Below are positions 8,766-57,578 of a stretch of DNA of 64,000 nucleotides, piece after piece. The number at the start of each line of letters is the position of its first letter. Positions within the stretch are counted from its first letter, which is position 1. The DNA is taken from the NCBI GenBank assembly GCA_009103225.1, contig RHPI01000772.1, forward strand, positions 446,558-510,557, in the 5' to 3' direction. Under the pieces are notes generated by a model that was given only the letters and a program-made list of their open reading frames with translations, was not told the DNA's origin and did no database searches. The stretch comes from Chlorokybus atmophyticus. Its lineage: Eukaryota; Plantae; Mesostigma and Chlorokybus algae. The position numbers and the translations under genes were made by a program.

Positions 8766-8809
8766 CCCCCCTGAGCTTCTGGAGAGGTTCTAGCTTTGGA
8801 GCTCAACTG

Positions 8810-19969: not shown

Positions 19970-20178
19970 ACAGCTAGTCCAAAGGTGAAAGTGTATGCAG
20001 GGTAGAGTGTTTGTGCTCTACCGCCTGTCTCGATGCCGCTACCATTTACCACACTAGTGCTTATGCGCACTATGTAATATAGTGATAACGAATGCCCAGG
20101 GATGTGTCCCCATATACAGACTGCACTATCTAATGCAGAATGCAACGCACTCACTTGAGCAAAGAGGGTGACACTGTG

Positions 20179-20769
20179 AGTCAACAAGCCACTACTATAG
20201 GTAGTGCTGTTTACACAGCTCTTTGCATGAGCGGAAAATGTGTTACACTGTTAAGTGAGGTGAATGAGCAAGCAACACGTGGATACTATGCCCTGACTGA
20301 TGACGACAAGCACACTGCAACCAGGCACACTAGGCCCACAGCGATGACAAGCACGATGCACACGCGAGCATGCACAGGCTCTCACACAGTGAGGGGGTTC
20401 TTGGTAACCGGGATGGCGTGTTCGTAGTTCAAGTCGTTTCACAAACTCTTGATTTTCTCACTCACAGTGACCAACTGATTCGGTGAACAATGTGACTACT
20501 TATACAAGTCAAGTCATGACTGTTTAGAACATAAGCTAACGGTCATACGGAGGCTATTTCCACAGCGATTGTCACTCGATGTAGAACACAACTTATAACT
20601 GAACAGCTACGCGCGGTGCCTATGTGGGCTATGGTTGTGAGCTACCTTGAAGTCATGACCTAGCTACTGGTCAGGGACGCGCGCGCGTTGGTATGTCAAT
20701 AGGCCGGGCGATGGTTTTGATGTAGACATGCCCGATGAAGGCTGGAATGTGTGGGCACCAAGCATGACA
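20179..20769 (-). repeat. Element 1 5' terminal repeat A1
   Basis: Matches 7934-8527; begins TGTCATG and ends TGGCTTGTTGACT on the minus strand; no B sequence outside it. Confidence 0.92.
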
Positions 20770-25974: not shown

Positions 25975-26192
25975 GTGGGTGGCGAAAGAAAGTCGGGGTT
26001 TGGGCGTTGGTAGCGTTTGGGGCGCAGGGTGCGGTGGTGGCTGTCTGTGCATGCTGAGTTGGGGGGCGAGGGGCGCTGATGTGACACGTTGCCTGCCTGC
26101 CTGCTTGCAACGCCCGGAGCCTCTGCGGGACGCCAGCAGAGTGGGGGTGCGTTGATAGTAACAGAGTGAGTGCCGTGCTGCTGCGCCGCTGT

Positions 26193-26466
<274 letters not shown>

Positions 26467-26647
26467 TGGTGCCTAGCTCCGCGCATGTTGACCCCCGCAC
26501 TGCGAGCTTGGTAATGATTGTGAGCTCTCTGCAGTTGCCCGTGTGTGTGCACGCCCGCACTCATTTCACCCCTTACTTCTTTCAGCAAGAAGCGTGTGTG
26601 GAGGACCTTGCGGCTCTGACACGACAACAGGGAGTGCGCAAGCAAGC

Positions 26648-29600
26648 ATGGCGCTGATGCGCGTGGCGGCGGCGCTGCTGTTTTTGCTCGCCCAGCCCCT
26701 CTCCGCTGGTGAGAAGGACTGCGAGGCATTGCGCGTGCCTCGTACTTCTGCTTGGTCAGTCCGGTTTGGTGGCAAGTGAATGCATGCACAAGTGCAATAC
26801 AAAAAATGGATGAAGCTGGATGGCGTGTTTGGCCAACACTCTGGCAGCATTGTGGCAAGGTTGTAGTACTTTTGTCCCAGTGCATTCATCGATGGCAGCA
26901 ATCAACATGACATAGAGAGGCGTCATGCATGAAACATGGACATGCACATGAGCATAAACAGTCAAGCCCCCCCTCCTTTCCCTCCTCGTCAAAGGAAAAG
27001 AAGGAGGCTTTCTCTCTTTGCAGCTGTGTGCAGTGTGTTGGCTTTCTTCTTGTATTGCACCAGTTGCTAGCCACGCTTTCTGGTGCTGACAACTTGAACT
27101 ATGTGTTGTGCAGCTGCCACGGCTGTGATCTCTGGACGACTGTTTTGCGACAAGTGCAACAGCGGCATCCAAGTCCCCATCTCGCGCGGCGAGGTATGCT
27201 TCGGTGCTAAGAGCAGGCAAGTCCCCTCAGCAATGGGTGGCCAGGACCAACTGAGTCAAGGCTCTCTATATGTCCACGCGTTTGCAACATATTTCTCTAT
27301 ACATGTGCGAGAGAGCGAGCCCAATTACTTCTAGTTGATGTCATGCATGTGCAGGTGACGCTGAATTGCACAACGTATGTCCTACTCTTTGACGGGGATA
27401 ATTATACCTACGGGGACCATTCGGTGTTGTTGCACTCCAGCCAGTCGACCATTACAAGTGCAGATGGCACATTCAGCTTCCCCAATGTCTATATGACAGA
27501 CCAATACGTGGAACGCGTGAAAAACACCTCCGTGCTGCCTTATTATGACGACTACTACAGTGTGACCTTCCCAGTGCACTGCGACGTGTATGTCCCTGCA
27601 TCAGCGCCATGCACTGCTGCGGCCATCGCATACCCTATCAGCAACAACGTTAACTGCACAAGCCAGCAAGGAAGCTATTCACAGGGCCCTTATGCCTCTT
27701 CCCCAAGCCTCGCCTCTGTGGACGATCCACAGGATGCCTCCACTTATGCCCTTGGCAACTTTTGCCTTGCGCCGGCGCAAACACCTGTACCACCGACGTG
27801 CCCATTCCCTTCCGTTGCGCCCTCGCTGCGGCGGCTGTTCTACACCAAGCCCGTCCCCGCCGGCAAGCAAGCGTATTATGACGAGTTTGGAAGGAGGTTG
27901 GAGATTGCCTTCTGGAACGATGCAACTGGCCGTAGTGTGACGGTGCTTGAAGCCTGCACCTACCCTTACTCTCCCCACAGCGTGGAAGCTATCGGTAGTA
28001 GCTATTACGGTTACGCTGGCAACCTTCAAGTCGTAGGAGGTACGTGTATGAGAGACACAGATGTGCGCAAATGAAACAATGCCAGGATGCCTGCTTGGAC
28101 CTTGAGAGCGTATGCAATGGCAGAGAACCTTTACTTCTTGGGGCGCAACTGCTCCACTCGCGCCGTGGGGGTGTTTCGCAAGCCTGCGGCATGGCATCCT
28201 GACCGCTACCAGCGCAGCTCGCACTTTGCTCAACCCGTTCTCATCAATTCCAACTACACTTACTACGATACGTTTGCTGTTGATGTGGATGGTGAGACAG
28301 CTTGCTTGGGACAGTGCGAGGGAGCGCAATGCATTGTACAGGCATCTCATGGCTCTCTTGTGGTGATGCAGATAGCGGAAAGGAGTACGTGTACTTTGCG
28401 GGTCTATATCCGGCTGGAGATGGCATCTCGTATGTCACGCATTTTGCCGTACAGACTGCCACCTGGCCCGAGGCGGTCGTCCTGGATGTGTATGAAGATT
28501 ACCAGTACACAGGCGAAAGAAGCCCGGGATATTCATGGGATGCGTTGCACAGCATTGTTGTCGATTCCTCAGGTGCGTGTGTGACAGCACAGATGCAAAA
28601 AGTGTGTGATTCACCATGCTTGTGAGCAACTGCTGGTACCACCACCACCACACACACACATACCAGCGCAACCAAGCACGTGCGCACGCGCATTCTTTGC
28701 AAAATTTTGACTTCTAAGCCTAAACCATGCGATAAGACTCTTACATGTGCTTGTGTATTATGTGGCTTGCAGTGACGCCGCGCAGGGTGTGGTGGGCTTG
28801 GGAGGAGAATTACGCGTTTCCTTCTCCAACCTGCTCCGTCAGCTACGGAGCCATCTCTCCCGATCATCGCTCGATTACCAACCAGCAGCTATGGGATTTT
28901 TGTGTCAAGTTTATGTCCTTCGACCAAGGTGCACATGCGAATGCACGCACGTGCACCGGCGCAAAACTGTGATCCATAAACACTGCTAACCACATGGTTG
29001 ATGACGACAGTACACAAGAGGCTGTTTGCGTTGCACTATGGCCTTGATTTCTTGCGTGATGGGCTACTGCTGTCGGTGTTCAACATATCCGGAGAAGGGC
29101 CCGTGCCCATCCTCAGCAGTCGCCCACTTGGGTTGCAAGTGGACGCCATAGCATACTACGCTCCAGCGAGTAAGCCTTGTGCCCCCCCCCCCCCCNNNNN
29201 NNNNNNNNNNNNNNNNNNNNNNNNNNNNNNNNNNNNNNNNNNNNNNNNNNNNNNNNNNNNNNNNNNNNNNNNNNNNNNNNNNNNNNNNNNNNNNNNNNNN
29301 NNNNNNNNNNNNNNNNNNNNNNNNNNNNNNNNNNNNNNNNNNNNNNNNNNNNNNNNNNNNNNNNNNNNNNNNNNNNNNNNNNNNNNNNNNNNNNNNNNNN
29401 NNNNNNNNNNNNNNNNNNNNNNNNNNNNNNNNNNNNNNNNNNNNNTCCCCCCCTTCTGCGTTCCACCATGCGCTCTCACCCTCCCCTCTTACATCTACAA
29501 TTGTCAACGCAGACTACCTTTTCTTCAGCGCGATGAACGTGTTGAACTTGGACAGCAGCGATGCAACGGCGTACGTGGAATTGTCACAGCTGGTGGGCAA

Positions 29601-29751
29601 GGCGGAGCTTGACGCTTGTCTTGCAGTTTCTGGCAGCAGCGATGAAGACAAGCGCAAGCCGTGTGCTGCGACAGGGGTTGCCACTCATGGCAACCGTCCC
29701 GTGCACATTGTGACTCCCCCCCCAGGCGGCAGCATCGCCCTGTTCTATTAG
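26648..29751 (+). CDS. Multi-exon gene for a predicted secreted protein: signal peptide, Pollen Ole e 1-like N-terminal domain, Pro-rich linker, possible beta-propeller-like region. Inferred exons 26648-26708, 27114-27193, 27355-28039, 28124-28291, 28342-28572, 28773-28928, 29011-29169, 29513-~29751 (3' end uncertain)
   Basis: GT-AG junctions with consistent phases give one open frame: MALMRVAAALLFLLAQPLSA|AATAVISGRLFCDKCNSG...VTLNC...TSADGTFSF, resembling the Ole e 1 pattern G.V.CD.C...V.L.C...T..DG.F. Exons are conserved in the inverted paralog. Confidence 0.72.
29196..29445. other. Assembly gap (250 N) inside an intron next to a poly-C run
   Basis: N run. Confidence 0.99.
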
Positions 29752-31986
29752 CTGATGGTGAGTGCATGCTTCCTCGTGCACCAGTAATTGCGTGGTCGCC
29801 ATGCTCACAAATGCAAATGTTTGCAGGGGATAAGTGGACAACCATGGCTCCATCATGTCAACCGCTAAAGGCTGGCCTTAGCGTGTATACAACCGCGTAC
29901 GCAACCAAGTCATACATGGTGTGTTGCATGCTAGTCACCTCCTTGCCCTACAAGCGTTATGCCTCCAGAAACAAATGTTTCACAAAGTGTTTGCATGCAA
30001 TCATGCATGCAAAAGCAAGCATGCGTGTGTCCGTGTGTGCGGGAGGGGGGAAAGGGGGGGAGGGGCATACCTGAGGTAGGCTAGGCCAGGTGCATTCGCG
30101 ACGGCAAGGGCAAAAAGCGCCGCCGAAGCAGCAGCAGGTGTGAGACCGTAATCATGGCTGCACGCAGCCCCACTGCAGACTGCAGAGCAAGCAAGCATTA
30201 GCATGAAGGCGGGACAGCAAACACAAATGCACACAAGCGACACTGTATTGTATACATGTAATCTCTTTCTATCAACATTAAGCATACATACGCCTGATGG
30301 AGTGTGCCATCAAAGTCCCCATCGGGCATGACCACATGTACACCACTCGTTTGTTAATAAGCAATGCGTGTGTGGCAGCACATTGTAATAGTGACAGCTG
30401 AGAGTGTTTGGGGTGGATGATAGACTCTCAATTGTCTGCGCATACATGTGGCGTCACGGTGCTATTTTCTCACACACTTTGCTTGGCCATGGGTCACATC
30501 TAAAAAGGACTGCAAACACCATGGGTTCAACCTGAGACCAACTATAGCCTTTGGATAGGTCCACCATCCGCCTTTTAGAATGTGTCTTAATTAACTTTGA
30601 TGGGTTCCGTACAGACAAGCGATGACTATGACATAAACACAGATAAGGCACGGTCCTTTAGTCATGTTATGAGAGATCAGGAGTCCCAATCTCATGTCTT
30701 GGCAAGACTCGACTATCAGTGCACATTTCTGTAAGCAAGATGTGAGCAACGTCCACAAGGCCATGGACAGTAGTGCGTTTTTCGATAACAAAAACGCAGC
30801 AAAAAATGCGGAGCAGCTAGGCTACGCATGCAATTCTTACAATTACGTGTTTGTTACTAGGAACAAACACACAAGCCGAGCCCGCACAAGCACTCGACAC
30901 AACTATGGCAAGAGAGTGTTGGTAAGTTTCGTCCATTCGCATGGGTTGGCGATGCGACGGCAACGGCACTGGCAAGCTAGCACAGGGGCACAGAGCGGGT
31001 ATAGAAGAGTCCGACAAGAGAGTCTAACAACTTTCCCAAGTGCGGCACCTGCACGATTGTAGCAACCATTGGCACCGACAGCGACACCACCACTTGCAGC
31101 GGCGGCAAACACGNGGGGGGAGGGGGACATGCAGCAGCAATCAACATTGGGCTAGTGGCAACGCCACCAGCACCTGCAGCAACGACACGTGCAACACCAT
31201 CAGCATTAGCAGCAGATGCAACAGCGCGTGCGACACTTCCAGCGTCAGTCGCGGCATCAGCAGCAGCACCCACGAGCCCTGCGGAGCGGCAACATCAGAG
31301 CAATGATTTGCAGTTGCTCGTTGACAGTGGTAATAGCGAGCGCAGGCGACGGTGGTAATAGTGCTCGCAGCCACGGCCATTCGCCTCACCAAAAGACGAT
31401 AAGACGACGCGGTCCCCACTACGGCTGCAGCGGATGTTGCTGCTTTGACTCACGAGGATGTTGTGTAGTGGTTGTACGCGTGTGTAGTAGAGTTGATAGT
31501 GAGTTGTAATACCGCTAGCCCATGAACCCTTGCGTTTCCATGTAATACACATCATCATCATAATTGCGGTGGCGGACGATGTGATCTATGTGGACGTCCG
31601 CCTGTCCGCGGCTGAGTTAGCGTTGCATACCACTGCATGTTAAGATTGCCGTGTTTGTGCCGCATATGCTCGTGAGGCAGCACCAGCAGCGGAGGCGCGC
31701 TGCACGCCAGTGGTGCCGCCCCCAGCAGCTGCGTGGGTGTGGGTGCGGAGCCAAAAGCGCTCTTCACATGTGATCGACTTGTTCGGTTCCACCTATCAGA
31801 TGGCATGATGTGTCCTGCGGCGTGGTGGAGACCCCGTCCCACCACTTCGTCGAGTGTGCATACTAGCAATGGTTTCGTGGTGATTCCTTCTAGGAGGTGA
31901 ATTCTTCTCTCCTTCTCTTCTTGCTGTTTTTCCGCCCTCCTTGCCCCACTTCCAGAGGGCATGCATTGCGCATGCTGTGGGGCAAG

Positions 31987-32580
31987 TGTCATGCCTATCG
32001 CCCAAGCATGCCAGTCGTCATCGGGCATGCCTACAGCGAGACCCTCGCCCGGCTTACTAGCATGGCGACCCGCGCGCGTCTCTGACCAGTAGCTAGGTCA
32101 TGTCTCTAGAGTAGCTCATGACCATAGCCTACGTAGGCACCGCGCGTAGCTGTTCAGTTGTGAGTTCAGTTATAAATCAGGTTCTATATCGAGTGGGATT
32201 TCCTGTGGAAATAGCCTCGATATGACCGTTAGCTTATGTTCTGGACATGAGTTGACTTGTATAAGTAAGCACAGTGTTCACCGGATCAGCTGGTGACACT
32301 GTAAGTGAGAAAGCTAAGAGCTTGTGAAGCGATACGAAACACGCCGTCTCGGTTCCCAAGAATCCCCTCACCGTGTGAGAGCCTGTGCATGTTTTTGTGC
32401 ACTGTGCTTGTCTTTGCTGTGAGTTTTTGTGTACTTGGTCGCGGTGTGCTTGTTGGCATCAGTCAGGGCATAGCATCCACGTGTTGCTTGCTCATTCACC
32501 TCACTGAACAGTGTAATTTCTCTTCCACTCATGCAAAGAACTGTGTAAACAGCACTACCTACAGTAGTGGCTTGTTGACT
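31987..32580 (+). repeat. Element 2 5' terminal repeat A1
   Basis: Near-identical to 42220-42821. Confidence 0.95.
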
Positions 32581-32791
32581 TACAGTGTCACCCTCTTTGC
32601 TTACGTGAGTGTAGTTGCAGGCTGTACATCAGCATCGCAATCTGTAGTTGTACACATCGCAGTGCAGTGCTGTCACCGTCAGCGCATAGCGCGCACAAGC
32701 GCTAGTGTGTTGGGTGATAGCAACACTGGAGATCCCATTGTAGAGCACAAATACTCTACCCTTCATCCACTTTCACCATCGCATCAGCTGT

Positions 32792-35700
32792 ATGAGCAGG
32801 CCCACCCCTTTCTCGCCAATAGAAGAAGGGGACCTCAACAGCTGGAGCCCAACCTCCAACCTTACCTACGAGCGCGCAAGTGAAGGGAGCGATTTCCGTA
32901 GCAGCAGAGGCTCACGCCCCGTTTCCGGCTTCACCTCCTCTCACTCCACTCCTCGACAACGAGCATCTCCACCACCGTCGGACAGTGACGACGAGGAGAT
33001 GGAGCCTTCCAGCTCAACCAACTCCCTACGCTTCTCCGGACGCCCTGGCACCACCTCACTTGACGAGTTCATCATCAAGTTCCACTCCAAGATGCGGCAG
33101 CAAGCCCTCAAGAGCAAGGATTGGACAGATGAGGTATCGTTTCATGTGTCCGCTCAATACCTTGATCACGACGCACATAATGTGTGGAAGTCCGCCGCTG
33201 AGTTGCACAAGATTGATGGCTATGGCGAGTTGGCCAGCACAATAGCCTCCACGTCACTGCATAGCCCATCGGTTACTGTCCCTGTATCAGCGGCCCCGCC
33301 AGCCTTAGTCACGGGTCTCACTCTAGCTGCAGCCATGGAGAAGGCAGAGAATAAAGAAGTTGAGGTGGTAGTGGCCTCGTTGACTCCTGCAGAGATCGAA
33401 AGCAAGAAGGCCGAGCGCCGGATCAGGATACTCAACCGCACCGCTGCCATCATCAGGGAGCAACAAGAGGAGCAGCAAGCTGCAGCGTTGGAGATGGGTA
33501 CGCCCCTGCTACCAACACCGAACTCGCGTGCTCCAGCGGGAGGCAGTGTTTTCACCCTCGGCTCAGTGGCATTGCGTGCACCCGCGCTTACGGTGGGCGC
33601 GGCCATGTCGGACTCCCCGTTGAAGGACCTCTACGCCGCACTCCGGCGCACCTTCCCACCTCAAACCAACAGCAAGGTGGAGGAGTTGAGGCGTTTTCGA
33701 CGGAAGCCCAATGAGGACCCTCTCCGACTGTATTTACGGTTGGAAGGGTTGCTTAGGGACACTGATTACAAAATCGTCAGCGAGGAGGCGGCAGCAGTGG
33801 TGTATGTGGCCGAGTTAGATCCCACCCTGAGTGAGTCAACGCGCCTGACGCCGAACTACAGCAGGCCCCTCGGCTACACCCTCAAGGAAGCTTTCGCAAC
33901 TGCACAAGCCATCCACAAGCGCGCAGTGTATGAGAAAGCGGTGCTGGACACCAACCGCAGTGCCTCGCGGCCTATGGCAGGCACAAGTGCAGAGCCTCTT
34001 CGGCGAGACCGCAGCCGAGAGCCGCAAGGCATCCACAACAAGGATAAACGGTCAGCTCATGCTGCCCTTGTGGCTCCAGTGCTGTGCCACCGGTGTGGTC
34101 GACATGGCCACTACCAAAAGGAGTGCACCGAAGATTATGGCAACCTTGTGTGCGACTACTGCCACAAGACGGGACACTTGGAGACAGTATGCTGGCTCGA
34201 GTTCCCTGAGCTGCGGCCCTCTATTGGCTACAACAACGGCAACAACGCTGTTGGCTACCGCGGCAACAACAACAACAACAACGGGGGCTACAACAACAGC
34301 CACCACGCTGGCGGCTACAACAACAGCAACAACGCTAGTTGTCGCAACAATGGCAACAACGCTGGTGGCCACAACCGCAACAACAACAACATTGCTGGCG
34401 CCCGAGAAGCTGGCTACAGAGGGAAAAACCGCCCTCCATAGCACAAAGGATTTGAGGGACTTCCTCGCGCTGGAGCTGCTGCTGTAAAGGCACCAGCCAA
34501 CCCACCAGCTATTAACCAAGTGGCAGCCCTGATGGCGCGCGTGGCACAGCTGGAGGAGAATAAGGAGCAGGACTATCAAGCCTGCTATGCTGCTAGGTGG
34601 GCACTGATGGCACCAAAACGGGATAGGGACACTCCCACGCCGTCACGCGTACAACCATCAAGACGTGCGCGCAGAGAAGCTGGCGCGTCGTCAACATCGG
34701 CATCGTCGGACGCCACAAGTGGTGCTGCCTCGGCAGCCACAACCACCGCTGGGACGACGCCGTCGACGACACCGTCGGCGTCCACACCGACCACGACAGC
34801 AGGTGTCAGCACTTTTGGCACCACGCTGTCCCCGGTAATGGAGAGCACCCACGCCGCAACAACCATGGTCGTTGGGTTCGTAAGTGGTGAATCCACCACT
34901 CCTGCCTCCATCGACAGCGACCACATCGGCCGCAACTGCTGCCACCCTCACAGCCGCCACCTCAGTAACGACGACTGCTGCAGGTGCCACCACCATCGTC
35001 TCCAGTAGTGCTGCCACACCCACTGCGCCACTTCCTGAGATTCGAACAGCACCGCCACCAGCGCTTGACGTCACACAGCAAGTGCCACGCGGACCACAAG
35101 CAAAACGCGCCTGGGCGTCGGTTCTACGCAATGTGGAGCCCACCACCATTGCGTACGGACCAGGGGGGCAACGCACCACGCGCGTGGCACGCGATGATCG
35201 CATCTTGCCCCTACCACCTCCAGAGTACCACACGCTGCCGGAACCCACACAACAGCAGCTGGAGGATGAAATCCTCGCCGGCACTGCGCCAGAAATGAGG
35301 GAGCGTCTCTTCGGGGTCACCTACCGGCGACCTGCAGTATTGGAGCTGGTCATTCAGTTGTTCTTGGCATTACACGCACAATTGCAAGGCGCACCCAGTC
35401 AAACGCGGCAACCCATGCCCGCTCAACAGATTGACTTCGAGCCTTCGCCACTGGACCCACTCGGACTTCAGCGCCACAAAATACAAGACCTCGTGGTCAC
35501 CATGTTAGACATCGCGCTGGGCACTGATCCCGCTCTCCGGGGGCTCACTCCAGGCAGTCGTCAAGAGCGTTTCTCGGCTCTCGAACAGGCACATCGTTAT
35601 CAGGTGGACTAAGCTGCCCAAGTGGACGCTCGCCGACGGGCGTACGAAGCCGCACACGCCGTTATCGTACCAACCGTAGCTTCGACAGATGTTGCCAGCG

Positions 35701-36728
35701 CCTCCACAACGCTGACAATAGGGTACTCCACGGCAGTCGCCATCGAACAGCCAGGGCAAGCAACTGTTGCAGACCAAGCGAGGGCGTTGGCACAATTGAG
35801 GGGGGTAATCGCCCCGCTGCTGCCTTCTTTGGTCGAAGACATGCCCGAGGATCAACGCGATGCAGTGCGAGGGTACCTCACCCCGCAAGGGGACACCACA
35901 AAACGAGGAGGAGCTGGTATGGTGGGGGAGCAACAACTCCGTACCGCACTCATCCGGCAAGCAGTCATGTTGCACAGGCCTGAGGGCAACACGTTGAGAC
36001 AGATAATGGGGATGCAAGAGGGCAGCGCCGCTCGTGCCCGTCTCGTGACATGGCTCGTTGCCAATCACCCTACTGTCCCCCTGTTTGCCTTTGGCAACCG
36101 AGCATCATGGTTGGGGGCGTTCGTTCGTTCGCTGCGCCAAGCATACGACGAGGCTGCCACCACAGCCCCGGACACGCTGGAGGGAATGCAAGAGGCAATG
36201 CTGCGGCTGCCAGGGGTGGAAGCCGCACGACAACGGCGGCGCATCGCCATTGCTCATGAGCTACACGCACAGCAGACTGACCTCCAGCGCACCCTACGCG
36301 CGCGCGACATGACCGTGCTCGATGTGGGAGTGGTACAAGGAAGGTGGGATGCCTATATGGCAGGGATCTTGCGAGTCCCCACCATCACTCACGACATGCG
36401 GCGACAGCTACTACGCGCCGTATACCTGCAGCCCATGCCTCAATATCATCATTGGATCGACACGGACACCGAGCCCACGGCCACGTGGGAAGGGACGTTG
36501 GTCAGAGATGCAGCTCATGCTGTCCGATGGACGTACGCCGCGGAGCAAGCTGAACGCGAGGCAGGCCCACAAACAGCGGGGCCGCCGGGGTTTCCTCCAC
36601 AGTCATTGGGTACACCCGCGGGCATGATTCCATCTTCGCAAAGGCGGCATCCACTTGCGCCGCCACCACAACCAGCGCCAGAACCTCCAGCACTGAGGCC
36701 CCCCCGTGTCTACCAACCACCACGCTAA
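32792..36728 (+). pseudogene. Element 2 Gag-like ORF with two CCHC zinc knuckles, followed by a Thr/Ala-rich linker and a long unassigned domain; premature stops and one frameshift
   Basis: CHRCGRHGHYQKEC, CDYCHKTGHLETVC; stops at 34439, 35610, 36726; homologous to element 1. Confidence 0.87.
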
Positions 36729-36800
36729 GGTCGGTTCGGCAGAGGGAGAGAGCAAGGAGGGGGTTCTCCGGACCCAGCAGGCAGAGGAGCTCTGGCTGCA

Positions 36801-37331
36801 ATGCGCTCAGCACCCCCAGCTGAGAGAACAGAGGCAAAGGTGCAGACAGCTCGTATGAAGAGGCTGCGTATCGACGCCAACGCTGCCATGGTGGCCAACC
36901 AAGGCAAGCACGTTACCATCAACGGCCTGGCACCCAAGCGAGTAATGTTGGACACCGGAGCACAGCCTGTCATCATCGGGCGCTTCCTCGCGCAGTCTCT
37001 CGGCATAACCAGCTCCGACTTGGTGCCTTGCCCGTACGTGTTGGACACTGCCACAGGTAGCCGAGATAAGGTGATGGGAGTCACCAGGGAGGCCTTCTGC
37101 ATTCGGTTGACAGGGCTGGACCCAACCCACACAACCGAGATTGTCCGGCAATGTGTGGTCACCAATGCCGGCTCCTTCGACTTTTGCTTGGGCAGGACTT
37201 CAACTTTCCTGTGGGCATGGGCCTCGATTGCTGGACAGAGCGAGCGTGGTTTCGGCCACATTGGGGATGAGGATGACGGGGAGGTGCAGGGTTTCCTGCC
37301 TCTCGAGTTGGCCTCGCGCACGCGCGCCTAG
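36801..37331 (+). pseudogene. Element 2 aspartic protease
   Basis: RVMLDTGAQPVII (DTG at 36951-36959). Confidence 0.9.
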
Positions 37332-37679
37332 CGCAGAGTGGCTGCCGTGGCCACACGCAGCCACGCCCGCACACGGCAGGCTGCAATGGCCACATACGAC
37401 GGCGCTCGGACGCAATTCGCTGCTGGTGCCACGGTCCCGTGTCGGACCGTCGACTCCTCTCCCACCCCGTACAACGAGGAGCAGGAGGATGCCACCGTGG
37501 AAGTGGCATTACAAGACTCAGCTGAACGGCGCTGGCGTGCACAGGTGGACGCACACATCTTGCTCAGCCATCCATTGATCACCACGCGCTTCCCCAACTA
37601 CCGAAGCCACATCAAGGTGCAGGACCACCATATGGTGGCCACCGGAGTGGTGGAGTTCCACACCTCTCGCAGGCAGCAG

Positions 37680-38640
37680 GGCATCATAGTGTTGGAGCTG
37701 TTCGGAGGCATTGGCAGTGGTCTTGCTGCGGTCCTCAACACAGGGGTAAAGGTTGTCAAATACTATTACTGCGACCCGGACCCACACGCTCAGATAGCCC
37801 TGGAACACCACTTACGCCAACTGCACGAAAGGTATTCACGTCAAATACCCCTCTCGGCGTTGCAAGGCAGCCTCAAAGCATTGCCACAAGACATCCGGCT
37901 GATCACTGAGGATCACCTACTGTCCCTAGGCAACGTCGACCTGTTAATAGCTGGGTGGGAATGCCAAGGGCACTGCAGGGCAGGGGCACAGCCTCGAAAA
38001 CCCTCGCTCCGGGCTGTTTTGAGAGCTGATGAGAATCATCCACCTCCTTCAACACCACCAGATCTCCAGACCCCTGGGGTACGTCATTGAAAATGTGCAT
38101 TCAGAGGACGACAGGCGTCCGCACGTGGTCTTCAGCTACCGACAAGTTTGCTCCATTCTAGGGCACCCACTCAAGGTGAACGCTGCACGACATGGCTCGC
38201 GCGCACATCGTGTACGTGCCAAGTGGACAAACTTGGCCACCGTGGAAGAACTCATGACCGCAGAATACACGCGCAGCGCTCGGCCGCGCGACCTGCTGGT
38301 CAGTGACATCCTTGACCCCGGCCGCACAGCACAACCTGTCCTGCGTCATGACCACCACCACTTCTACCCGTGCAATCAGCCAGGGCAGCCCCGTCGCGCA
38401 CTGCCCACATTGGTGTCCTACCAAGGCTCCTACGCATTCCGGAACGGTGGTGATGGGATGGTGTTTGATGCGACCACCAACAGGTTGAAGGAACCCAACG
38501 CGCGCGAACGTGAACGCGCCATGGGATTCTTCCCCAACAGCATCACGGGTTCATCGCTGACAGATAGTCAGCAATGCCAGCTGCCTGGCCGCGCCATGGA
38601 CCAAAACAGCATGGTATGGTTGCTGGAGCTTGGCTTCGCA
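37680..38640 (+). pseudogene. Element 2 C5 cytosine DNA methyltransferase domain between protease and RT (one frameshift near 37985)
   Basis: Motif I VLELFGGIGSG, motif IV DLLIAGWECQGH, motif VI YVIENV, motif VIII AHRVRAKWTN, motif X-like GRAMD. Confidence 0.92.
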
Positions 38641-39080
38641 TTACAAGACTGCCACGTGTCCTTCAAGGATCTCGAACACTTGGCTGGGGGGTGGGCTGAT
38701 CGCGAAGTCGACACCAAGGCAGCTCACACAGCCCTCGAGGTGGTCCACATGGAGGAGCAAGCAGCAGTGACAGTGGAGGACATTCCCGTGGTCGCCAACG
38801 CAACCTCCTGGGACCATGCCATTGGCCCGTTGGCCACAAAAGACACTCGAGAGAAGCTGGAGACTCTCCTCAACAATTGGAGGAGCCAATTCAGCTTCAA
38901 TGTGAAGGAATTGGGGACATGCTCAATGTACCAGATGGACATCGAGCTGGTGGACACTGAGCCGGTGTTCCGACGGCAATACAGGCTCTCCAAGTTGGAA
39001 GAGGACTTGGTGGAACAGAGATGTAAGGCGCTGCTTGATGCAGGCCTTATCAAAGAGTCCACATCGGAGCAGCAACCGTC

Positions 39081-40210
39081 ATGCCACTGAAGAAGGATTC
39101 AGCAGGCAACTGGACAAAGCGACGCATGTGTGGCGACTATCGCCCCCTCAACAACAAGACCAAGCAAGACAAGTACCCCATGCCCACAGCGGAGGGTATC
39201 TTTAATGATGTGGGAGACTGCACAGTCTTCAGCATCCTGGACATGCGTCAAGGGTACAACCAAATCGCCATCAAGGACGAGGACAAGCACAAGACCTCCT
39301 TCTGGGGCATCCGACAGTTGTACCAATGGAAGGTAATGCCGTTCGGGCTGAAGAACGCCCCCGCCAAGTTTCAACGCGTCATGGACAAGGCCTTGAAGGG
39401 GCTGGACTGCGCGCGGTGCTACATCAATGACATCCTCATCTTCAGCCGCAGCAGCGAGGAGCATCTTCAGCACATCGAAGCGGTGCTGGAACGACTCAAG
39501 GGAGTGGGGATGACCGTACACCCTGACAAGTGTACCTTCTTCACCCACAAGGTGCCGTACTTAGGGCACATGATTGTGCCCCATGGTGTGTATGTGCAGC
39601 AGGCAAAAGTAGAGGCTCTGGCAGCTATCCCTGCCCCGACAGACCTCACACGTCTGCGCGCTTTCTTGGGACTTGCCAACTACTATCGCCGGTTCGTGAA
39701 GGACGTCGCGAAGATCGCCAGACCCTCAACGAGCTACTGAAGAAGGAGGTGGAGTTCGCATGGCTTGAGCCGCAACAGCAGGCCTTCGAGGAGCTGAAGA
39801 GCAGGCTCACCAGCGCTCCCATCATTCAACGTCCGGACTACGCCAAGCCTTTCATCCTTTACACCGACTGGAGCAAGCTGGGGATGGGAGCGGTGCTGGT
39901 GCAGCACGATGAGAACAAGAAGGAGCGGGTGGTGTCATACGCCAGCCGAAGCAACAACAGCGCCGAGGCCAACTACAGCAGCTACGAAGGGGAGTGCCTC
40001 GCTGCAGTGTGGGCCATCTCCTTCTTCCGACCTTTCCTCTTTGGTCGACAGTTTCAATTGATCACCGATCATCAGCCCCTCAAGTGGCTGATGACCAACC
40101 AACACCTGACAGGGAAACTTGCTCGATGGGCCCTGCTGTTGCAGGAATACGACTTCGAGATCGACCACCGCGTTGGCCTTACCAACCAGAACGCCGATGG
40201 CCTCAGTCGC
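39081..40210 (+). pseudogene. Element 2 reverse transcriptase and RNase H
   Basis: RMCGDYRPLN, YPMP, LDMRQGYNQI, MPFGLKNAP, YIND (YIDD in element 1), FLGLANYYRRFV, YTDWS, ITDHQPLKWL. Confidence 0.96.
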
Positions 40211-40626
40211 AACCCTCACCTCAGCACCAACGACGCAACTGGAGCTCGGCATGAGCTCGTCCCTGCAGCAACAGCCCCCACCATAGCAGCCATGCTGCTG
40301 CCGCGTTGCGCTCAGGGCGCAAGACCAACACCACGGCCTCAGCAATAGCAGAGGAAATTCCTGCCCTTGAGCCAAAAGACTCTGCTACAACCACACCCTT
40401 GGGAGACGCCCACGCAGCCGACATTGACGTCGATAACACAGAGCTGGCGCCCACTGACACCAGGCAGGACATATGGCAAGACAAGCCATCACTCTCCTTT
40501 CTTCAAAGTGGCCAGCTTCCCTCCGGCATGAGCGCCCGAGAGAAGGACCGAGTCAACCAATGCACCCGTCACTATTGATGGGTAGGTGACAAGCTGTATC
40601 GCCGCTTCCACGACGAAGACAAGGAA

Positions 40627-41931
40627 GTGCCGACCCCGGTCACGCGCGAGGGCATCATCACTTCCCTCCACACTGAGCTTGGACACTTCGGTGTCAAGCG
40701 TACAGTCAGCCTAGTGAGGGCACAATATTGGTGGTATGGATTAACAAAACACGTGCAGGGGTTCGTCAGCCACTGCCAACAGTGTGACATGGTGCGCGCC
40801 AGCCTCAATACGCATAGCGCCACCTTGCACCCACTCCCCATCTCCGGTCTCTTTTATCGATGGGGACTCGACATATTGGGGGACTTGGCACCCTCAGCAC
40901 GTGGCAACCGGTACATCCTGGTCATGATCGAGCACTTCTCCAAATGGGTGGAGCTGGTACCATTACCCGATAAGAGCAGCAGGGGGGTGTCTCAAGCCTT
41001 CCTCTCTCACGTTCTCAGCCGATTTGGCAGCTGCGCCGAGGTCATCACTGACCAAGGTACTGAGTTCAGAGGGGAATTCGACACCCTCTTGGACAATTGT
41101 TACATCGACCACCGCCGTACCTCGCGTGATCACCCTCAAGCCGACGGCCTCGCCGAGCGTACAATACAGACCATTAAGAAGGCACTCCGCAAGTACGTGC
41201 TGGAGTACGAGAAGAACACTTGGGATGATCACCTCCCGTGGGTGGCCCTCGGGTATCGATTGTCAAAGCAGGCGGCTCTGCGGGAGTACAGCCCGTACTA
41301 CCTGCTGTTCGGGCGACCACCATTGCTCCCCTTCCGTGCGCAGCAGGAGGTGGATCACGTCGTGAACAACCTCGACGACCCTGACTGGATGCACCACTAC
41401 ATCACCACGCGCGCTGCGCTTTTCGAGCACACCGTCCCCATGGCCTTCAACAACCTGCGCATTGCGCAGCATCGCGACACGCTGCGCTACGAGCGCGTAC
41501 GCAGCGGCTTCTACAACGAGCGCCAACGGCGGTTCCAAGCGGGGGACTTTGCCTATCGCATGGCAGCCACCGTAGACACGCTTGACACCTCCGTAGGCCG
41601 CACCGTCTACAAGGTACTTAAAGTGTACCCCACAGGGGTGCTGGACCTCCTTGGTTAGAACGGAGAGAGGTTGAAGGACAACATGGTAAACTGTGCGCCA
41701 TGTCACCTTCCTTATGTAGCCGGCTTCGGGCGTATTCAGCACCCTCGTCCCGCGCGCAGCACACGCTGTGAACGCTGCGGCAGCGCCAACGACGACGCAC
41801 TCATGATGCTCTGCGATGGCTGCAACAAGGGCCTGCATTGCTACTGCCTGGAGCCACCTCGGGACGCGATACCTATGGAGGAGTATTGGTGCGACGATTG
41901 CCGTACCAACGGCCCTCCTCACTTGCGCTAG
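40627..41931 (+). pseudogene. Element 2 DDE integrase with C-terminal PHD finger (in-frame TAG at 41656)
   Basis: H..LGH...C..C; WGLDILG, ITDQGTEF, DGLAER; C4HC3 CERC..CDGC..H.YC..WCDDC. Confidence 0.95.
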
Positions 41932-41976
41932 CAGCTGAGCTCTGGAGCTGGATCCTCCTCCAGAGCCCAGGGGGGG

Positions 41977-43039
41977 TGGCTTGTTGACTTTGTGTGCTAC
42001 AGCACAGCATGTACACTAGGGAGAACACCGACTCCACCTGCCCGTACTACCCAGCAGCAGCAGACCAGCTGCACAGAGCACTTGTCACCATGAGGGTTGG
42101 GGTCATCTTTTGCTTTTGCTGCACGTTGCACAGGTGGCGCAGCAGCATGTCCAGCAGGCATGGCTGTCCATGCAGCTGTCCAAGACAGCGTGACCCTCGA
42201 CTCCCCTCGACCCGACAGCTGTCATGCCTATCGCCCAAGCATGCCAGTCGTCATCGGGCATGCCTACAGCGAGACCCTCGCCCGGCTTACCAGCATGGCG
42301 ACCCGCGCGCGTCTTTGACCAGTAGCTAGGTCATGTCTCTAGAGTAGCTCATAACCATAGCCTACATAGGCACCGCGCGTAGCTGTTCAGTTGTGAGTTC
42401 AGTTATAAGTCAGGTTCTATATCGAGTGGGATTTCCTGTGGAGCCTCGATATGACCGTTAGCTTACGTTCTGGACAGTCATGAGTTGACTTGTATAAGTA
42501 AGCACAGTGTTCACCGGATCAGCTGGTGACACTGTAAGTGAGAAAGCTAAGAGCTTGTGAAGCGACTTGAAACTACGAAACACGCCGTCCTGGTTCCCAA
42601 GAATCCCCTCACCGTGTGAGAGCCTGTGCATGTTCTTGTGCACTGTGCTTGTCTTTGCTGTGAGTTTTTGTGTACTTGGTCGCGGTGTGCTTGTTGGCAT
42701 CAGTCAGGGCATAGCAATCACGTGTTGCTTGCTCATTCACCTCACTTAACAGTGTAATTTCTCTTCCACTCATGCAAAGAACTGTGTAAACAGCACTACC
42801 TATAGTAGTGGCTTGTTGACTTTGTGTGCTACAGCACAGCATGTACACTAGGGAGAACACCGACTCCACCTGCCCGTACTACCCAGCAGCAGCAGACCAG
42901 CTGCACAGAGCACTTGTCACCATGAGGGTTGGGGTCATCTTTTGCTTTTGCTGCACGTTGCACAGGTGGCGCAGCCGCATGTCCAGCAGGAATGGCTGTC
43001 CATGCAGCTGTCCGAGACAGCGTGACCCTCGACCCGACA
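41977..43039 (+). repeat. Element 2 3' terminal block B1 (41977-42217) - GC - A2 (42220-42821) - B2 (42809-43039)
   Basis: Direct sequence comparison; purine tract AGGGGGGG at 41969-41976 precedes B1. Confidence 0.95.
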
Positions 43040-43744
43040 CAAGCTTTTCCCACTTGTCTTATGCATATGGTACATGTGGCTCTCCCGGAATCGCTCATGC
43101 TTCAACAACGTTTCCTCTTCCACTCTTTGCAAACATCATGCTGATGGCTAAGGGAGATTGGCACCGAGTGCTCCCCTTAACTAGCTCAAACAACAAACGC
43201 TTGTTCGCCTTCCAGTAATAAAAACCCACCTGGGGCAGAAGCGACCTACTGTGTTCCTCTTCTTGGTCCCTCCCATTCCCTCGTGTTTCCTGGCATTCCC
43301 TCCCCTCCCCTCGGCTAGAAAACCTTAACTAGCTTGCTATCTTCATTAATCTTCGCTCACGCTATACCCATCATAGCTACTCATCATGTACTTGCATTTC
43401 AGCATGTGCATGTGTAGCCAGCTCTCCTTTCGCAACTCCTAAACTCTGCCTTCGGGCCCCTTAATCAATTGCATTTTGTGTGCAAAAAGGGAAAAAGAGA
43501 GAAGGCTCTATGAGCATGGCATGATTTGGATTGAAGGTTTGAAAAAGCCCACGAGGAGCACCGCAAGGCCGTCAATGACGCATCACAATTGAGCAAGAGA
43601 GTGGCAACTGCTGTGAAGATTTTTGCAGCTGTCATTCGCCCTCTGATTTGAAAGACAAGCATTAATGAGAGTAGCACAGCTTACAGTCTTCGTTTTTGAG
43701 CAGGGGGGGGGGGGGGCGGGGGCACCACCTCACTTGACGAGTTC

Positions 43745-48143: not shown

Positions 48144-49001
48144 CAAGTGGAGATGTGCTTGTAGAGAACTCCTCTTGAAGTTGCCATGATGGTGGATCTA
48201 CCTGCAGGCTATGGCAGGGCTTTGGTTGAACTCATCATGTTTGCAGTCCTGTAAGATGTGAACCATGGCCAAGCAAAGTGTGTGAAGAAATGACACCATG
48301 ACGCCACATGCATGCGCAGACAATTGAGAGTCTATCATCCACCCCTGGCGCTCTCAGCACTACTATGGCACTATTACAATGTGCTGCCACACAAGCATTG
48401 CATATTGACAAACGAGTGGTGTACATGTGGTCATGCCCAATGCGGACTTTGATGTCACAACACTCCATCAGGCGTATGTATGCCTAGTGTTGATAGAAAG
48501 AGATCACAAGTACACAACACAGTGTCGCTTGTGTGGGTTTGTGTTTGCTGTCCCGTCTTCGTGCTAATGCTTGCTTGCTATGCAGTTTGCAGTGGGGCTG
48601 CTTGCAGCCATGATTGCGGTCTCACACCTGCTGCTGCTTCGGTGGTGCTCTTTGCCCTTGCCGTCGCGAGTGCACCTGGCCTAGCCTGCCTCAGGTATGC
48701 CCCTCCCCCCCCCCTCCCCCCCATCACGCACACACGGACACACGCGCGCTCTTTTGCATGCATGATAGCATGTACTTTGTGAGGATTTGTTTCTGGAGGC
48801 ATAATGCTTGTAGGGCAAGGAGGTGACTAGCATGCAACACACCGTGTATGCCTTGGTTGCGTACACGGTTGCCTGCAGGCTAAGGCCAGCCTTTAGCGGT
48901 TGACATGATGGAACCTGGTTGTCCACTCATCCCCTGCAAACATTTGCATTTGTCAGACCACGCAGATAAATGTGCACGAGGGAGCATGCGCTCACCATCA
49001 G

Positions 49002-52000
49002 CTAATAGAACAGGGCGATGCTGCCGCCCGGGGGGGGAGTCACAATGTGCACGGGACGGTTGCCACGAGTGGCAACCCCTGTCGCAGCACACGGCTTGCG
49101 CTTGTCTTCATCGCTGCTGCCAGAAACTGCAAGACAAGCGTCAAGCTCCGCCTTGCCCACCAGCTATGACAATTCCACATACGCCGTTGCATCGCTGCTG
49201 TCGAAGTTCAACACGTTCATCGCGCTGAAGAAAAGGTAGTTTGCGTTGACAATTGTAAATGTAAGAGGGGAGGGTGAGAGCGCATGGTGGAACGCAGAGN
49301 NNNNNNNNNNNNNNNNNNNNNNNNNNNNNNNNNNNNNNNNNNNNNNNNNNNNNNNNNNNNNNNNNNNNNNNNNNNNNNNNNNNNNNNNNNNNNNNNNNNN
49401 NNNNNNNNNNNNNNNNNNNNNNNNNNNNNNNNNNNNNNNNNNNNNNNNNNNNNNNNNNNNNNNNNNNNNNNNNNNNNNNNNNNNNNNNNNNNNNNNNNNN
49501 NNNNNNNNNNNNNNNNNNNNNNNNNNGGGGGGGGGGGGGGCACAAGGCTTACTCGCTGGAGCTTAGTATGCTATGGCGTCCACTTGCAACCCAAGTGGGC
49601 GACTGCTGAGGATGGGCACGGGCCCTTCTCCAAATATGTTGAACACCGACAGCAGTGGCCCATCACGCACGTAATCAACACAAACAGCCTCTTGTGTACT
49701 GTCGTCATCAACCATGTGGTTAGCAGTGCTTATGGATCATAGTTTGCGTCGGTGCGCGTGCGCGTGCGTGTGTTCACATCTGCACCTTGGTCGAAGGACA
49801 TAAACCTGACACAAAAATCCCAGCTGCTGGTTGGTAATTGAGCGCTGATCGGGAGAGATGGCTCCGTAGCTGACCGAGCAGGTTGGATGCGCGCCATATG
49901 GATCCTGCCAACCCCACGACACCCTGCGCGGCATCACTGCAAGCCCCATAATACACAAGCACATGTAAGAGTCTCATCGCATGGCTTGGGCTTAGAAGTT
50001 AAAATGATGCAAGGAATGCACGCGCGCGAACGTGCGCATGCGCGTGCTTGCGTGCGCATGTATGTGTGTGTGTGTGGTGGTGGTGGTGGTGGGTGGGTGG
50101 TGGGGTGGTGGTGGGGTGGTGGTGGTGGTGGTGGGGGAGGGGGCGAGCGTGTGCACATGTGAGTGTATTTATGAATGTGCGTGCGCGCGTGACTGTGTGC
50201 GCATTCGCGGGCGTGCATATGTGCGCGCGTGTAAGCCTAAGCGTGAGCTTGAGGGTGTGTGCGCGTGCGGGTGTGCATGTGCGCAAGCACGCGGTCATCA
50301 CGGTCGGAGATGAGAGTGGGGACTTCTTCTTAGCAGCCCCACCCCCCGTGCCCCTCCGTGGGTGCCCACATTTCCTCTCTCCCAATGCCCGCTTCCCTCC
50401 CTGCTGCATTCTAAGGACCTGCTACACAAAAGCAATACTACCAGCAGTTGCTCACAAGCATGGTGAATCACACACTTTTTGCATCTGTGCTGTCACACAC
50501 GCACCTGAGGAATCGACAACAGTGCTGTACAACGCATCCCATGTGTATGCATATGGGGGTCTGTAGCCTTCATACTGGTAATCTTCATACACAACCAGGA
50601 CCACCGCCTCGGGCCAGGTGGCAGTCTGTACGGCAAAATGCGTGACATACGAGAATCCATCTCCAGCTGGATATTGAGCCGCAAAGTACACGTACTCCTT
50701 TCCGCTATCTGCATCACCACAAGAGAGCCATGAGATGTCTGTACAATGCATTGCGCTCCCTCGCACTCTCCCGAGCAAGCTGTCTCACCATCCACATCAA
50801 CAGCAAACGTATTGTAGTAAGTGTAGTCAACATTGATAAGAACGGGTTGGGCAAAGCGCGAGCTGCGCTGGTAGCGGTCAGGATGCCATGCCGCAGGCTT
50901 GCGAAACACCCCCGCGGCGTAATTGGAGCAGTTGCGCCCCCAAAAGTAAATGTTCTCTGCATGCATTGCATACGCTCAAGGTTCAAGCAGGCATCCTGGC
51001 ATTGTTTCATATGCGCACCTCTGTGTCTCTCACACACGTACCTCCTACGACTTGAAGGTTGCCAGCGTAACCGTAATAGCTACTACCGATAGCTTCCACG
51101 CTGTGGGGAGAGTAAGGGTAGGTGCAGGCTTCAAGCACCGTCACACTACGGCCAGTTGCATCGTTCCAAAAGGCAATCTCCAACCTCCTTCCAAACTCGT
51201 CATCATACGCTTGCTTGCCGGCGGGGACGGGCTTGGTGTAGAATAGCCGCCGCAGCGAGGGTGCAGCGGAGGGAAATGGGCACGTTGGCGATACAGGTGT
51301 TTGCGCCGGTGCAAGGCAAAAGTTGCCAAGGGCATAAGTGGAGGCATCCTGTGGATCGTCCACAGAGGCGAGGCTTGGGGAAGAGTCATAAGGGCCCTGT
51401 GGATAGCTTCCTTGCCGGCTTGTGCAGGTAACGTTGTTGCTGATAGGATACGCTATGGCCGCAGCACTGCATGGCGCTGATGCAGGGACATACACGTCGC
51501 AGTGCACTGAGAAGGTCACACTGTGGTAGTCGTTATAATAAGGCGCCACGGGGGTGTTTTTCGCGCGTTCGACTTGAGCATATTGGTCTGTCATATAGAC
51601 ATTGGGGAAGCTGAATGTGCCATCTGCATTCGTAGTTGTCGACTGGCTGGAGTGCAACAACACCGGAGGGTACGCATAGTAATATTCATCCTCGTAATAA
51701 ACATGGACATACGTTGTGCAATTCAAATGAAAAAGTGTGGACATATGGGGAGCCTTGACTCAGTAGGTCCTGGCTCTCACCCACTGCTGAGGGGATTTGC
51801 CTGCCCTTAGCACCGAAGCGTACCTCGCCGCGCGAGACGGGGACTTGGATGCCGCTGTTGCACTTGTCGCAGAACAGTCGTCCAGAAATCACAGCCGTGG
51901 CAGCTGCACAACGCATGGGTGAAGTTGTTGTCAGCACCAGAAAGCGTGCCTAACAACTGGTGCGATACAAGGAGAAAGCCAACACACTGTCATGCAAGAA

Positions 52001-52370
52001 GAGGAAGCCTCCTCCTCCTTTTTCTCTGAAGACAAGGGAAAGGAGGGGGGCTCCGAATGTTCATGCTCATGTTTATGTCCATGTTTCATGCATGTCGCCT
52101 CTCTTTGTCATGTTGACAGCTGCAACTGGATGAATGCATTGGGACAGAAGTACTACAACCTTGCCACAATGCTGCCAGAGTGTTGGCCAGACACGCCATC
52201 CAGCTTCATCCATTTCTTAAACTGCACTTGTGCATTCACTTTGCCACCAAACCGGACTGACCAAGACCAGAAGTACGAGGCACGCGCAATGCCTCGCAGT
52301 TCTTCTCACCAGCAGTGAGGGGCTGGACGAGCAAAACCAGCAGCGCCGCCGCCACGCGCATCAGTGCCAT
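49002..52370 (-). pseudogene. Inverted paralog of the 26648 gene; damaged (lost intron-2 acceptor, paired frameshifts, premature TAA at 49563-49565)
   Basis: Exon-by-exon homology, with ATG at 52370 and MALMRVAAALLVLLVQPLTA; flanking homology ~24700-30580 vs ~53000-48190. Confidence 0.75.
49300..49526. other. Assembly gap (227 N) in the intron homologous to the 29196 gap
   Basis: N run beside poly-G. Confidence 0.98.
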
Positions 52371-52555
52371 GATTGCCTGCGCACTCCCTGTTGTCGTGTC
52401 AGAGCCGCAAGGTCCTCCACACACGCTTCTTGCTGAAAGAAGTGAGGGGCGAAATGAGTGCGAGCGTGCACACACACGGGCAACTGCAGAGAGCTCACAA
52501 TCACCACCAAGCACGCAGAGCGGGGGTCAATACGCGCGGAGCTAGGCACCAGCAG

Positions 52556-52597
<42 letters not shown>

Positions 52598-54259: not shown

Positions 54260-54459
<200 letters not shown>

Positions 54460-57400: not shown

Positions 57401-57578
57401 AGGCATAGCTGAGTGGAATGCTCCCTACTGCTGGTAGCGCGGGAATGTAGACTGGCTGTAGGCATTCAGGAGAAGGTTGGCCTCTCCTGGACGGGTGGCG
57501 TGACAATGTGATGGTCATCGCTTGTGTATAGGGAATTCATCAAAGAAGAAATCAAAACCTGTTTTGTAAGGTGGACCT

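Follow-up and report, generated by a model that had tools for sequence, protein, structure and literature searches.

In a 64,000-nucleotide stretch of the genome of the alga Chlorokybus atmophyticus (assembly GCA_009103225.1, contig RHPI01000772.1, forward-strand positions 446,558 to 510,557; hereafter the window), we characterized a retrotransposon, element 2, that is Ty3/Gypsy by its proteins without having the two equal long terminal repeats (LTRs) that define this group, and that is not of the DIRS type. A single repeat, A, stands at its left end and a B-A-B arrangement at its right end. By sequence comparison, a lineage whose integrated copies have this A...B-A-B layout is spread over green algae, liverworts, and mosses. 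The structural description of the element (layout, ends, and duplications) is secure. For its origin, the best-supported inference, which we consider probable, is that complementary DNA (cDNA) ends are joined and that integrase then cleaves an internal palindrome.

The first-pass annotation of this DNA, made from the letters alone, had described the split layout, outer ends of the form TGTC...GACA, and a CAAG on either side. A repeat search and direct reading bore out the layout, with coordinates that had been right to within one or two bases, and direct reading also confirmed the ends and flanks (Table 1). A1 and A2 are 97.8% identical, and B1 and B2 are 98.7% identical. A1 contains the 3' part of the U3 region followed by R and U5. 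Two equal LTRs bounding the element were not found: on the left there is A alone, on the right B-A-B. A2 and B2 share 14 nt, a stretch that we named p and that occurs a single time at their join (42809-42822). From its position, p is predicted to be a terminal redundancy of the cDNA. B2 is 10 nt shorter than B1, through a slip between two short CTCGAC repeats before the GACA end (42190-42217 versus 43020-43039).

Table 1. Parts of elements 1 and 2 and of related copies in the window
Feature	Position	Strand	Remarks
Element 2	31987-43039	+	11,053 bp; order A1-internal-B1-GC-A2-B2 (repeat search and direct reading)
Left target-site duplication CAAG	31983-31986	+	Identical to 43040-43043
Repeat A1	31987-32581	+	Left integrase end; first bases TGTCATGCC
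TATA box TATAAGT	32260-32266	+	32 nt upstream of self-primer segment; kept in element 1
Self-primer segment, middle of A	32292-32306	+	GGTGACACTGTAAGT; presumed first transcript bases
p	32568-32581	+	Final 14 nt of A; B begins with the same 14 nt
Primer-binding site, self-priming	32578-32592	+	ACTTACAGTGTCACC; starts three bases before the end of A1
gag ORF with CCHC zinc knuckle	32792-34441	+	Pfam zf-CCHC, E = 0.0012, just under curated cut-off
Aspartic protease	36801-37331	+	Pfam Asp_protease_2, E = 8e-8
Reverse transcriptase	39081-39740	+	Pfam RVT_1, E = 1e-31
RNase H, Ty3/Gypsy type	39530-40348	+	Pfam RT_RNaseH, E = 1.5e-38; frame differs from reverse transcriptase
Integrase, H2C2 zinc domain and DDE core	40627-41658	+	Pfam Integrase_H2C2 and rve
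PHD finger, C-terminal	41659-41931	+	Pfam PHD (PF00628), E = 5.5e-10; integrase frame, after stop codon 41656-41658
Polypurine tract	41962-41976	+	Last seven bases G; adjoins first base of B1
Repeat B1	41977-42217	+	5' part of U3; GACA at its end
Junction J, perfect palindrome GACA-GC-TGTC	42214-42223	+	Right-end and left-end integrase sites abutted
Dinucleotide GC	42218-42219	+	Between B1 and A2
Repeat A2	42220-42822	+	Repeat search
Repeat B2	42809-43039	+	Ends in GACA, the right integrase end
Right target-site duplication CAAG	43040-43043	+	Direct reading
Element 1	7718-20769	-	13,052 bp; order of parts as in element 2
Element 1 B2	7718-7946	-
Element 1 A2	7934-8527	-
Element 1 palindrome J	8524-8533	-
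Element 1 B1	8530-8765	-
Element 1 G-run	8766-8771	-
Element 1 primer-binding site	20167-20180	-
Element 1 A1	20179-20769	-
Third B-A-B	61651-62701	-	Within 97-99% segmental duplication of window 1-10000
Duplicate of element 1, 3' end (B2-A2-J-B1 onward)	61651-64000	-	Continues past window edge

To define the coding part, we searched the open reading frames (ORFs) of at least 120 amino acids on both strands of element 2 (20 ORFs) against Pfam, with recombinase matches considered up to E = 0.1. Protease, reverse transcriptase (RT), RNase H, and integrase follow one another along 36801-41658, which is the Ty3/Gypsy pol order. Among solved structures, the best match of the RT is that of Ty3 (4ol8, E = 8e-48), and the integrase matches those of prototype foamy virus (PFV) and Ty3 in PDB (about 3e-19). 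The catalytic residues D82, D142, and E177 (D,D35,E) are invariant in an alignment with 15 relatives. A DDE integrase with a zinc domain thus occurs together with a short target duplication and TG...CA ends. The chromodomain that marks chromoviruses was not found, and the C-terminal module of the integrase is a PHD finger instead. In relatives, integrase and PHD finger form one protein. Element 2 is decayed, because its pol is split over several frames and a stop codon separates integrase from PHD finger. No tyrosine recombinase or methyltransferase was matched in these ORFs on either strand, and no tyrosine recombinase is listed among the called genes of related loci. The first-pass claims of a Gypsy-like RT and RNase H, of an HHCC-DDE integrase, and of no recognizable recombinase therefore all stand. 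Two regions of about 2 kb each, between gag and protease (34500-36800) and between protease and RT (37340-39080), have long ORFs and no Pfam domain; similar unannotated ORFs are present in relatives (for example, at 5525-7060 of locus L004). Coding repeats of a 24- to 27-nt period, rich in AAC and GGC codons, lie near gag in both window elements (34231-34391 in element 2 and a longer array, 18325-18564, in element 1).

The window contains a second element of the same design. Element 1 lies on the opposite strand, and its A1 and A2 are 95.8% identical and its B1 and B2 96.1%. Its flanks show a flush repeat, AGT, with a mismatch at the fourth base. Repeats A and B of the two elements are just 80-85% identical (15-20% diverged). 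They are therefore two diverged members that share a layout, and the first-pass annotation had been right that a single rearranged copy does not account for it. The A pair and the B pair of each element are equally diverged, which argues that both repeat pairs were created at insertion. Element 1 is an older, diverged member of the family of element 2. It is longer mostly because of an internal tandem duplication of about 1.6 kb (9912-11802; 9912-10211 versus 11503-11802, 97% identical). A third B-A-B is no independent insertion, since it lies inside a direct segmental duplication (window 1-10000 and 54400-64000, 97-99% identical) that takes in the 3' end of element 1.

We then looked at relatives of the integrase ORF. 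Proteins of about 55% identity were found in Klebsormidium nitens, the liverworts Calypogeia and Riccia, Closterium, Volvox africanus, and many metagenomes, and a C-terminal PHD finger (PF00628) is recorded in most of them. The order G-run/B1-palindrome-A2/B2 recurs in Klebsormidium (L001), a Joint Genome Institute (JGI) contig (L003), and Riccia (L087). A scan of metagenome contigs yielded 80 loci, mostly from moss-associated samples. After loci that represent the same insertion seen twice were merged, 29 non-redundant loci had B-palindrome-A-B after the integrase, 22 had B only (A-internal-B), and 2 had a truncated B-A. None of the 10 five-prime ends seen had A-B-A before the coding part; all had a single A. 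Where both ends were on the contig, A1 and A2 were about 7-9 kb apart. Independent relatives have 4-bp duplications outside A1...B2 (ATGT, ACCT, ACAT, and AAGG), and two A-internal-B copies carry clean duplications of their own (CCAA and TACA). B measures 16 nt in Closterium (B1), 73, 113, or about 175 nt elsewhere, and 241 nt in the window, and it is always shorter than A. The Closterium locus (L086) has the tract, the 16-nt B1, the palindrome, A1 and A2, and an 11-nt self-primer match; no B2 was found there, and the copy is probably broken or nested. In Volvox africanus (L085, integrase 41% identical), no polypurine tract, palindrome, or B-A-B was found, and the Calypogeia locus (L002), where nested and inverted copies are entangled, yielded no clean element. 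Two pairs of loci share flanks (L011/L019, 94%; L023/L048, 99.9%) and represent the same insertion in related genomes or samples, not independent evidence. In one locus (L071), the region downstream of a related integrase-PHD gene is broken up at 8430-8870 by telomere repeats of the plant type, (TTTAGGG)n.

The layout is explained by three features that the first-pass annotation did not contain, namely the tract before B1, the site for the self-primer behind A1, and the palindrome at the B/A junction. A G-run also stands against B1 in element 1, Klebsormidium, L003, Riccia, Closterium, and all moss loci. The self-primer segment in the middle of A is a perfect 15-nt complement of the site at the end of A1, and this pairing closes the predicted leader in both minimum free energy (MFE) and centroid folds. 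The pairing is kept between the elements by a compensatory change (TAAG/CTTA in element 2, TGAG/CTCA in element 1). The main moss family has a TATAAAA about 33 nt upstream of its self-primer segment, so that a TATA box lies at 32-33 nt in two families. This pairing of mid-A with a site after A1, below a TATA box, indicates the self-priming signature known from Tf1, with the transcript start being a prediction from sequence. In four families, the predicted transcript 5' end is complementary over 11-17 nt to a site after the left repeat, some decayed copies showing a poorer match or none; the position is common to the families, and the sequences are unrelated. In the main moss family most copies match over 10-16 nt, and 3 of the 10 examined have 8 nt or an off-register match; the match is 17 nt in two members of a second family (L084 and L070; none was found in the third, L061), and 11 nt in Closterium, and in relatives it is likewise present in MFE and centroid folds. 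We also considered p as a tRNA-type primer site, but this was ruled out because its continuation does not fit the conserved T-arm. About 25 nt before the end of A, both elements have a TGTAA motif (32540-32548 in element 2), which resembles the chlorophyte poly(A) signal; if it is used, R would take up nearly all of the rest of A, leaving a U5 that extends little beyond p.

The junction palindrome J occurs three times in the window, each time at a B/A junction, versus 0.06 occurrences expected by chance. Each of its halves forms one end of the integrated element. From Klebsormidium to the mosses, the palindrome and the 9 nt with which A begins are conserved, unlike the sequence around them. 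Some old moss copies have AC, GT, or AT for the central GC, and these variants are the transitions expected from deamination at methylated CHG sites.

These observations bear on two other explanations. One is that this is an ordinary Gypsy element whose LTR is A, with B1 and B2 arising from later duplication, from a nested solo LTR, or from faulty assembly. LTR-finding software would indeed match A1 to A2. However, the layout is shared by both window copies, which are diverged, and by dozens of loci across several plant lineages, the target duplications lie outside B2 and not outside A2, A by itself has no CA end, and the junction palindrome is conserved. The reading is thus already contradicted, and we give it almost no credence. 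The possibility, raised in the first-pass annotation, that most copies would carry two full LTRs is contradicted as well, by relatives from several streptophyte lineages that share the split layout.

The other explanation is mobilization of the kind known from PAT, Ngaro, and TOC, through a circle and a tyrosine recombinase that acts in trans or has been lost, with the integrase as a passenger. The order A1-internal-B1-A2-B2 is the textbook mark of these tyrosine-recombinase retroelements, which make no target duplications (PMC4157794, PMC7192593, PMC8969392), and TOC1 is regarded as a non-autonomous member of them (PMC9940879, PMC5613634). In its repeats, element 2 has the DIRS-order layout shared by PAT/TOC/kangaroo and Ngaro/VIPER, in which the internal B1/A2 junction carries the joined termini via RNA and which imply an intermediate that is circular or joined (PMC4157794, PMC7192593). 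However, PAT/TOC and Ngaro/VIPER elements have a tyrosine recombinase and often a methyltransferase, whereas the elements described here have a DDE integrase whose catalytic residues are invariant across the lineage, TG...CA-type ends, a polypurine tract, and a self-primer site. The Pfam search of the ORFs matched neither a recombinase nor a methyltransferase, and the expected absence of duplications was not seen; CAAG flanks element 2, and ATGT, ACCT, ACAT, AAGG, CCAA, or TACA flanks its relatives. We therefore consider recombinase-based mobilization very improbable.

How, then, might such copies arise? The LTR is the stretch between the polypurine tract and the primer site, and so the LTR as defined by RT is B-GC-A. 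With the tract and primer in these positions, standard strand-transfer rules predict a cDNA of the form (B-GC-A)-internal-(B-GC-A). The integrated copy has the parts of this LTR-internal-LTR order in circularly permuted form, the palindrome being the point of opening, with the left B gone and a B placed after the right A. The repeat unit defined by RT would thus differ in this lineage from the unit defined by integration. Because polymerases extend 3' ends only, the minus strand cannot grow past its own 5' end to make the second strand of B2. By deduction, B2 must be the B from the left tip of a cDNA that became attached to a right terminus.

In the mechanism that we propose, the right end of the cDNA would be joined to a left end, either its own or that of a second cDNA. 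The 14 nt of p shared by the cDNA tips could guide closure in the window family, through annealing or a homology-guided strand switch, and in the moss family the ends might be joined bluntly or by 2 nt of microhomology. Integrase would recognize the palindrome half-sites and not the cDNA tips. It would cut both strands after CA (leaving CA-3'OH) in the palindrome of the LTR copy beside the primer-binding site, and the freed ends would be inserted with a 4-bp stagger. In effect, B would leave the left tip of the cDNA and reappear at the right end of the provirus. Transcription of the internal B-GC-A would pass the junction to the next generation via RNA, while B2 would supply the right-hand integrase site and A2 the 3' R that the transcript needs. 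Together with the inherited B-GC-A, these two functions would explain why A-internal-B-A-B is the smallest viable provirus.

The A2/B2 join sets the end of U5 against the start of U3. In the main moss family it is either blunt (...CAAT + ATACATG) or has a 2-nt AT overlap (...CAAT + ACATG), and one third of the copies have other small irregularities there. The boundary between G-run and B1 is uniform in this family, unlike the A/B join. Within the second family, the join of L084 and that of L063 are set apart by bases that resemble a polypurine-tract remnant. This heterogeneity resembles that of two-LTR circle junctions and fits a join made anew at each insertion, without amounting to proof.

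The join could also be made without ligation of ends. RT alone might build the final linear DNA, by a homology-guided transfer via p or an end-to-end template jump that extends the plus strand beyond the U5 end into B and the palindrome; integrase would then process only the palindromes nearest the tips, with no closed circle and no host end-joining. Hepadnaviruses use a short terminal redundancy of the minus strand for strand transfer, and in the window family the 14-nt identity of the U5 end and the U3 start lies exactly at the required transfer point. Furthermore, this route would yield A-internal-B-A-B, or A-internal-B if extension does not occur, and never A-B-A-internal-B, and these are the classes seen. 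However, other families have only 0-2 nt of overlap at the join, the one-sided extension is assumed and not derived, and the heterogeneity of the join suits end-joining at least equally well. We regard an RT-only route as unlikely, though worth serious consideration.

Several points weigh against joining of cDNA ends followed by cleavage of the palindrome. Both are steps reconstructed from genomic sequence. A two-LTR circle holds two identical palindromes, yet only one of the two possible products is seen; the chosen palindrome would be the one nearer a DNA tip (B is always shorter than A), which might account for this asymmetry, as might additional binding sites in the leader. The 22 loci that are A-internal-B only do not have the full layout; they may have arisen by recombination between B1 and B2, represent a second integration product made when both palindromes are cut, or reflect the collapse of short-read assemblies. 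The redundancy p is confined to the window family. When the blunt and 2-nt-overlap states were placed on a tree of moss copies, in which two sister pairs turned out to be the same insertion seen twice, they were scattered, changing 6 times versus a shuffle mean of 5.9. This agrees with a join formed at every insertion, but the test has little power because the tree is star-like and poorly resolved. Both window copies are decayed. Finally, no A1 was detected within reach in L003 or in Riccia L087, despite their clean B-J-A/B ends, and no B2 was detected in L086 or in L072, which is B-J-A.

The A-internal-B copies also bear on an episomal reading, in which a one-LTR open circle replicates through terminally redundant RNA, as in caulimoviruses. 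Integrated copies would then be occasional by-products, with A-internal-B-A-B the only integrated form able to restart the cycle. An A-internal-B unit bounded by half-palindromes does behave like a circular genome linearized at J, and such copies are common. The third-best match of the RT among solved structures, 8r0s, was deposited as "Enzymatic polyprotein," and we take it to be a caulimovirus RT. However, an intact DDE integrase and a PHD finger are conserved, the copies are numerous, dispersed, and flanked by duplications, movement and coat proteins of plant viruses are absent, and gag is of the retrotransposon type. An episomal life cycle therefore seems improbable to us. We return to joined ends and cleavage of the palindrome as the preferred reading. 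Only tentatively, and short of favoring it, do we extend that reading to an ancient, streptophyte-wide Gypsy lineage that would integrate obligatorily via a joined-end (circle-junction) intermediate, its integrase opening an inherited palindrome of the LTR-LTR type.

Parts of this scheme have counterparts in known systems. Tf1/Sushi-type elements (Tf1 of Schizosaccharomyces pombe and the Tcn1 clade in mosses) share the Gypsy domain order. They carry a chromodomain and a pair of equal LTRs, the tips of which serve as integrase ends, whereas the elements described here have internal integrase sites, a permuted provirus, and a PHD finger. The Tf1 integrase reportedly must also trim extra bases from cDNA 3' ends. 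As predicted here, Tf1/Sushi-type elements lack a tRNA-type primer site, and their transcript start pairs just downstream of the left repeat; in plants, such self-priming has been assigned only to the Tcn1 clade, in a survey built on canonical full-length elements (PMC6317226).

The integrases of PFV and human immunodeficiency virus type 1 (HIV-1) have been shown to cut a palindromic LTR-LTR junction (PMC1180852, PMC1905944). In retroviral two-LTR circles, CA...TG half-sites are abutted into a palindrome, and cutting of both strands gives 3'-processed ends, as we propose here. However, the retroviral junction exists only in a by-product circle whose role in replication is disputed, whereas here it is built in, inherited, and strictly conserved. 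Abutted ends are also the active substrate in the circle-junction transposition of bacterial IS3/IS30/IS911-type elements, which have DDE enzymes, and a short terminal redundancy closes the linear product of hepadnavirus minus strands; in both cases enzymes and hosts are unrelated, and the likeness is an analogy only.

Within the green lineage, Gypsy-7a_cRei and REM1 of Chlamydomonas are likewise Gypsy elements with a PHD finger. Unlike the elements described here, they have been described with two LTRs and with the PHD finger listed before the integrase. According to a figure legend, the right LTR of Gypsy-7a_cRei ends in 8 bp that its left LTR does not have (PMC9940879). This difference could be the same design with a tiny B, which is a lead and not a result. 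In the Chlamydomonas paper, the term "LTR subparts" refers to the LTRs themselves. A search of the full-text literature, which covered neither Repbase, Dfam, nor theses, found no description of a Gypsy element with a DDE integrase and split repeats. The architecture is therefore probably undescribed.

The rule that integrase acts on the tips of reverse-transcribed DNA underlies both our understanding of LTR retrotransposons and the software that detects them, and this lineage breaks it systematically. In plant and algal genomes, its members will be missed, given wrong boundaries, or classified as DIRS. Split direct repeats are not bound to tyrosine recombinases, which bears on the origin of DIRS, PAT, and Ngaro elements from LTR elements (PMC4157794). 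The lineage is also a natural system for asking whether a retroviral-type integrase works from an internal palindromic junction. If joined-end integration is indeed obligatory, the circle-junction pathway, long since abandoned as a route of integration, would be realized here in nature. The lineage would then also present, with a DDE integrase, the counterpart and perhaps the forerunner of an architecture of split repeats known so far only from tyrosine-recombinase retroelements.

The surroundings of the elements are themselves repetitive. Element 2 is bracketed by an inverted duplication (26421-30305 and 48460-52597) whose arms are 91-98% complementary. This is either an element with long terminal inverted repeats or an inverted segmental duplication; ORFs in its arms and flanking element 2 had no Pfam match. 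Long simple-repeat arrays with an 8-nt period lie at 26089-26700, 6553-6730, 21751-21876, and 60521-60668.

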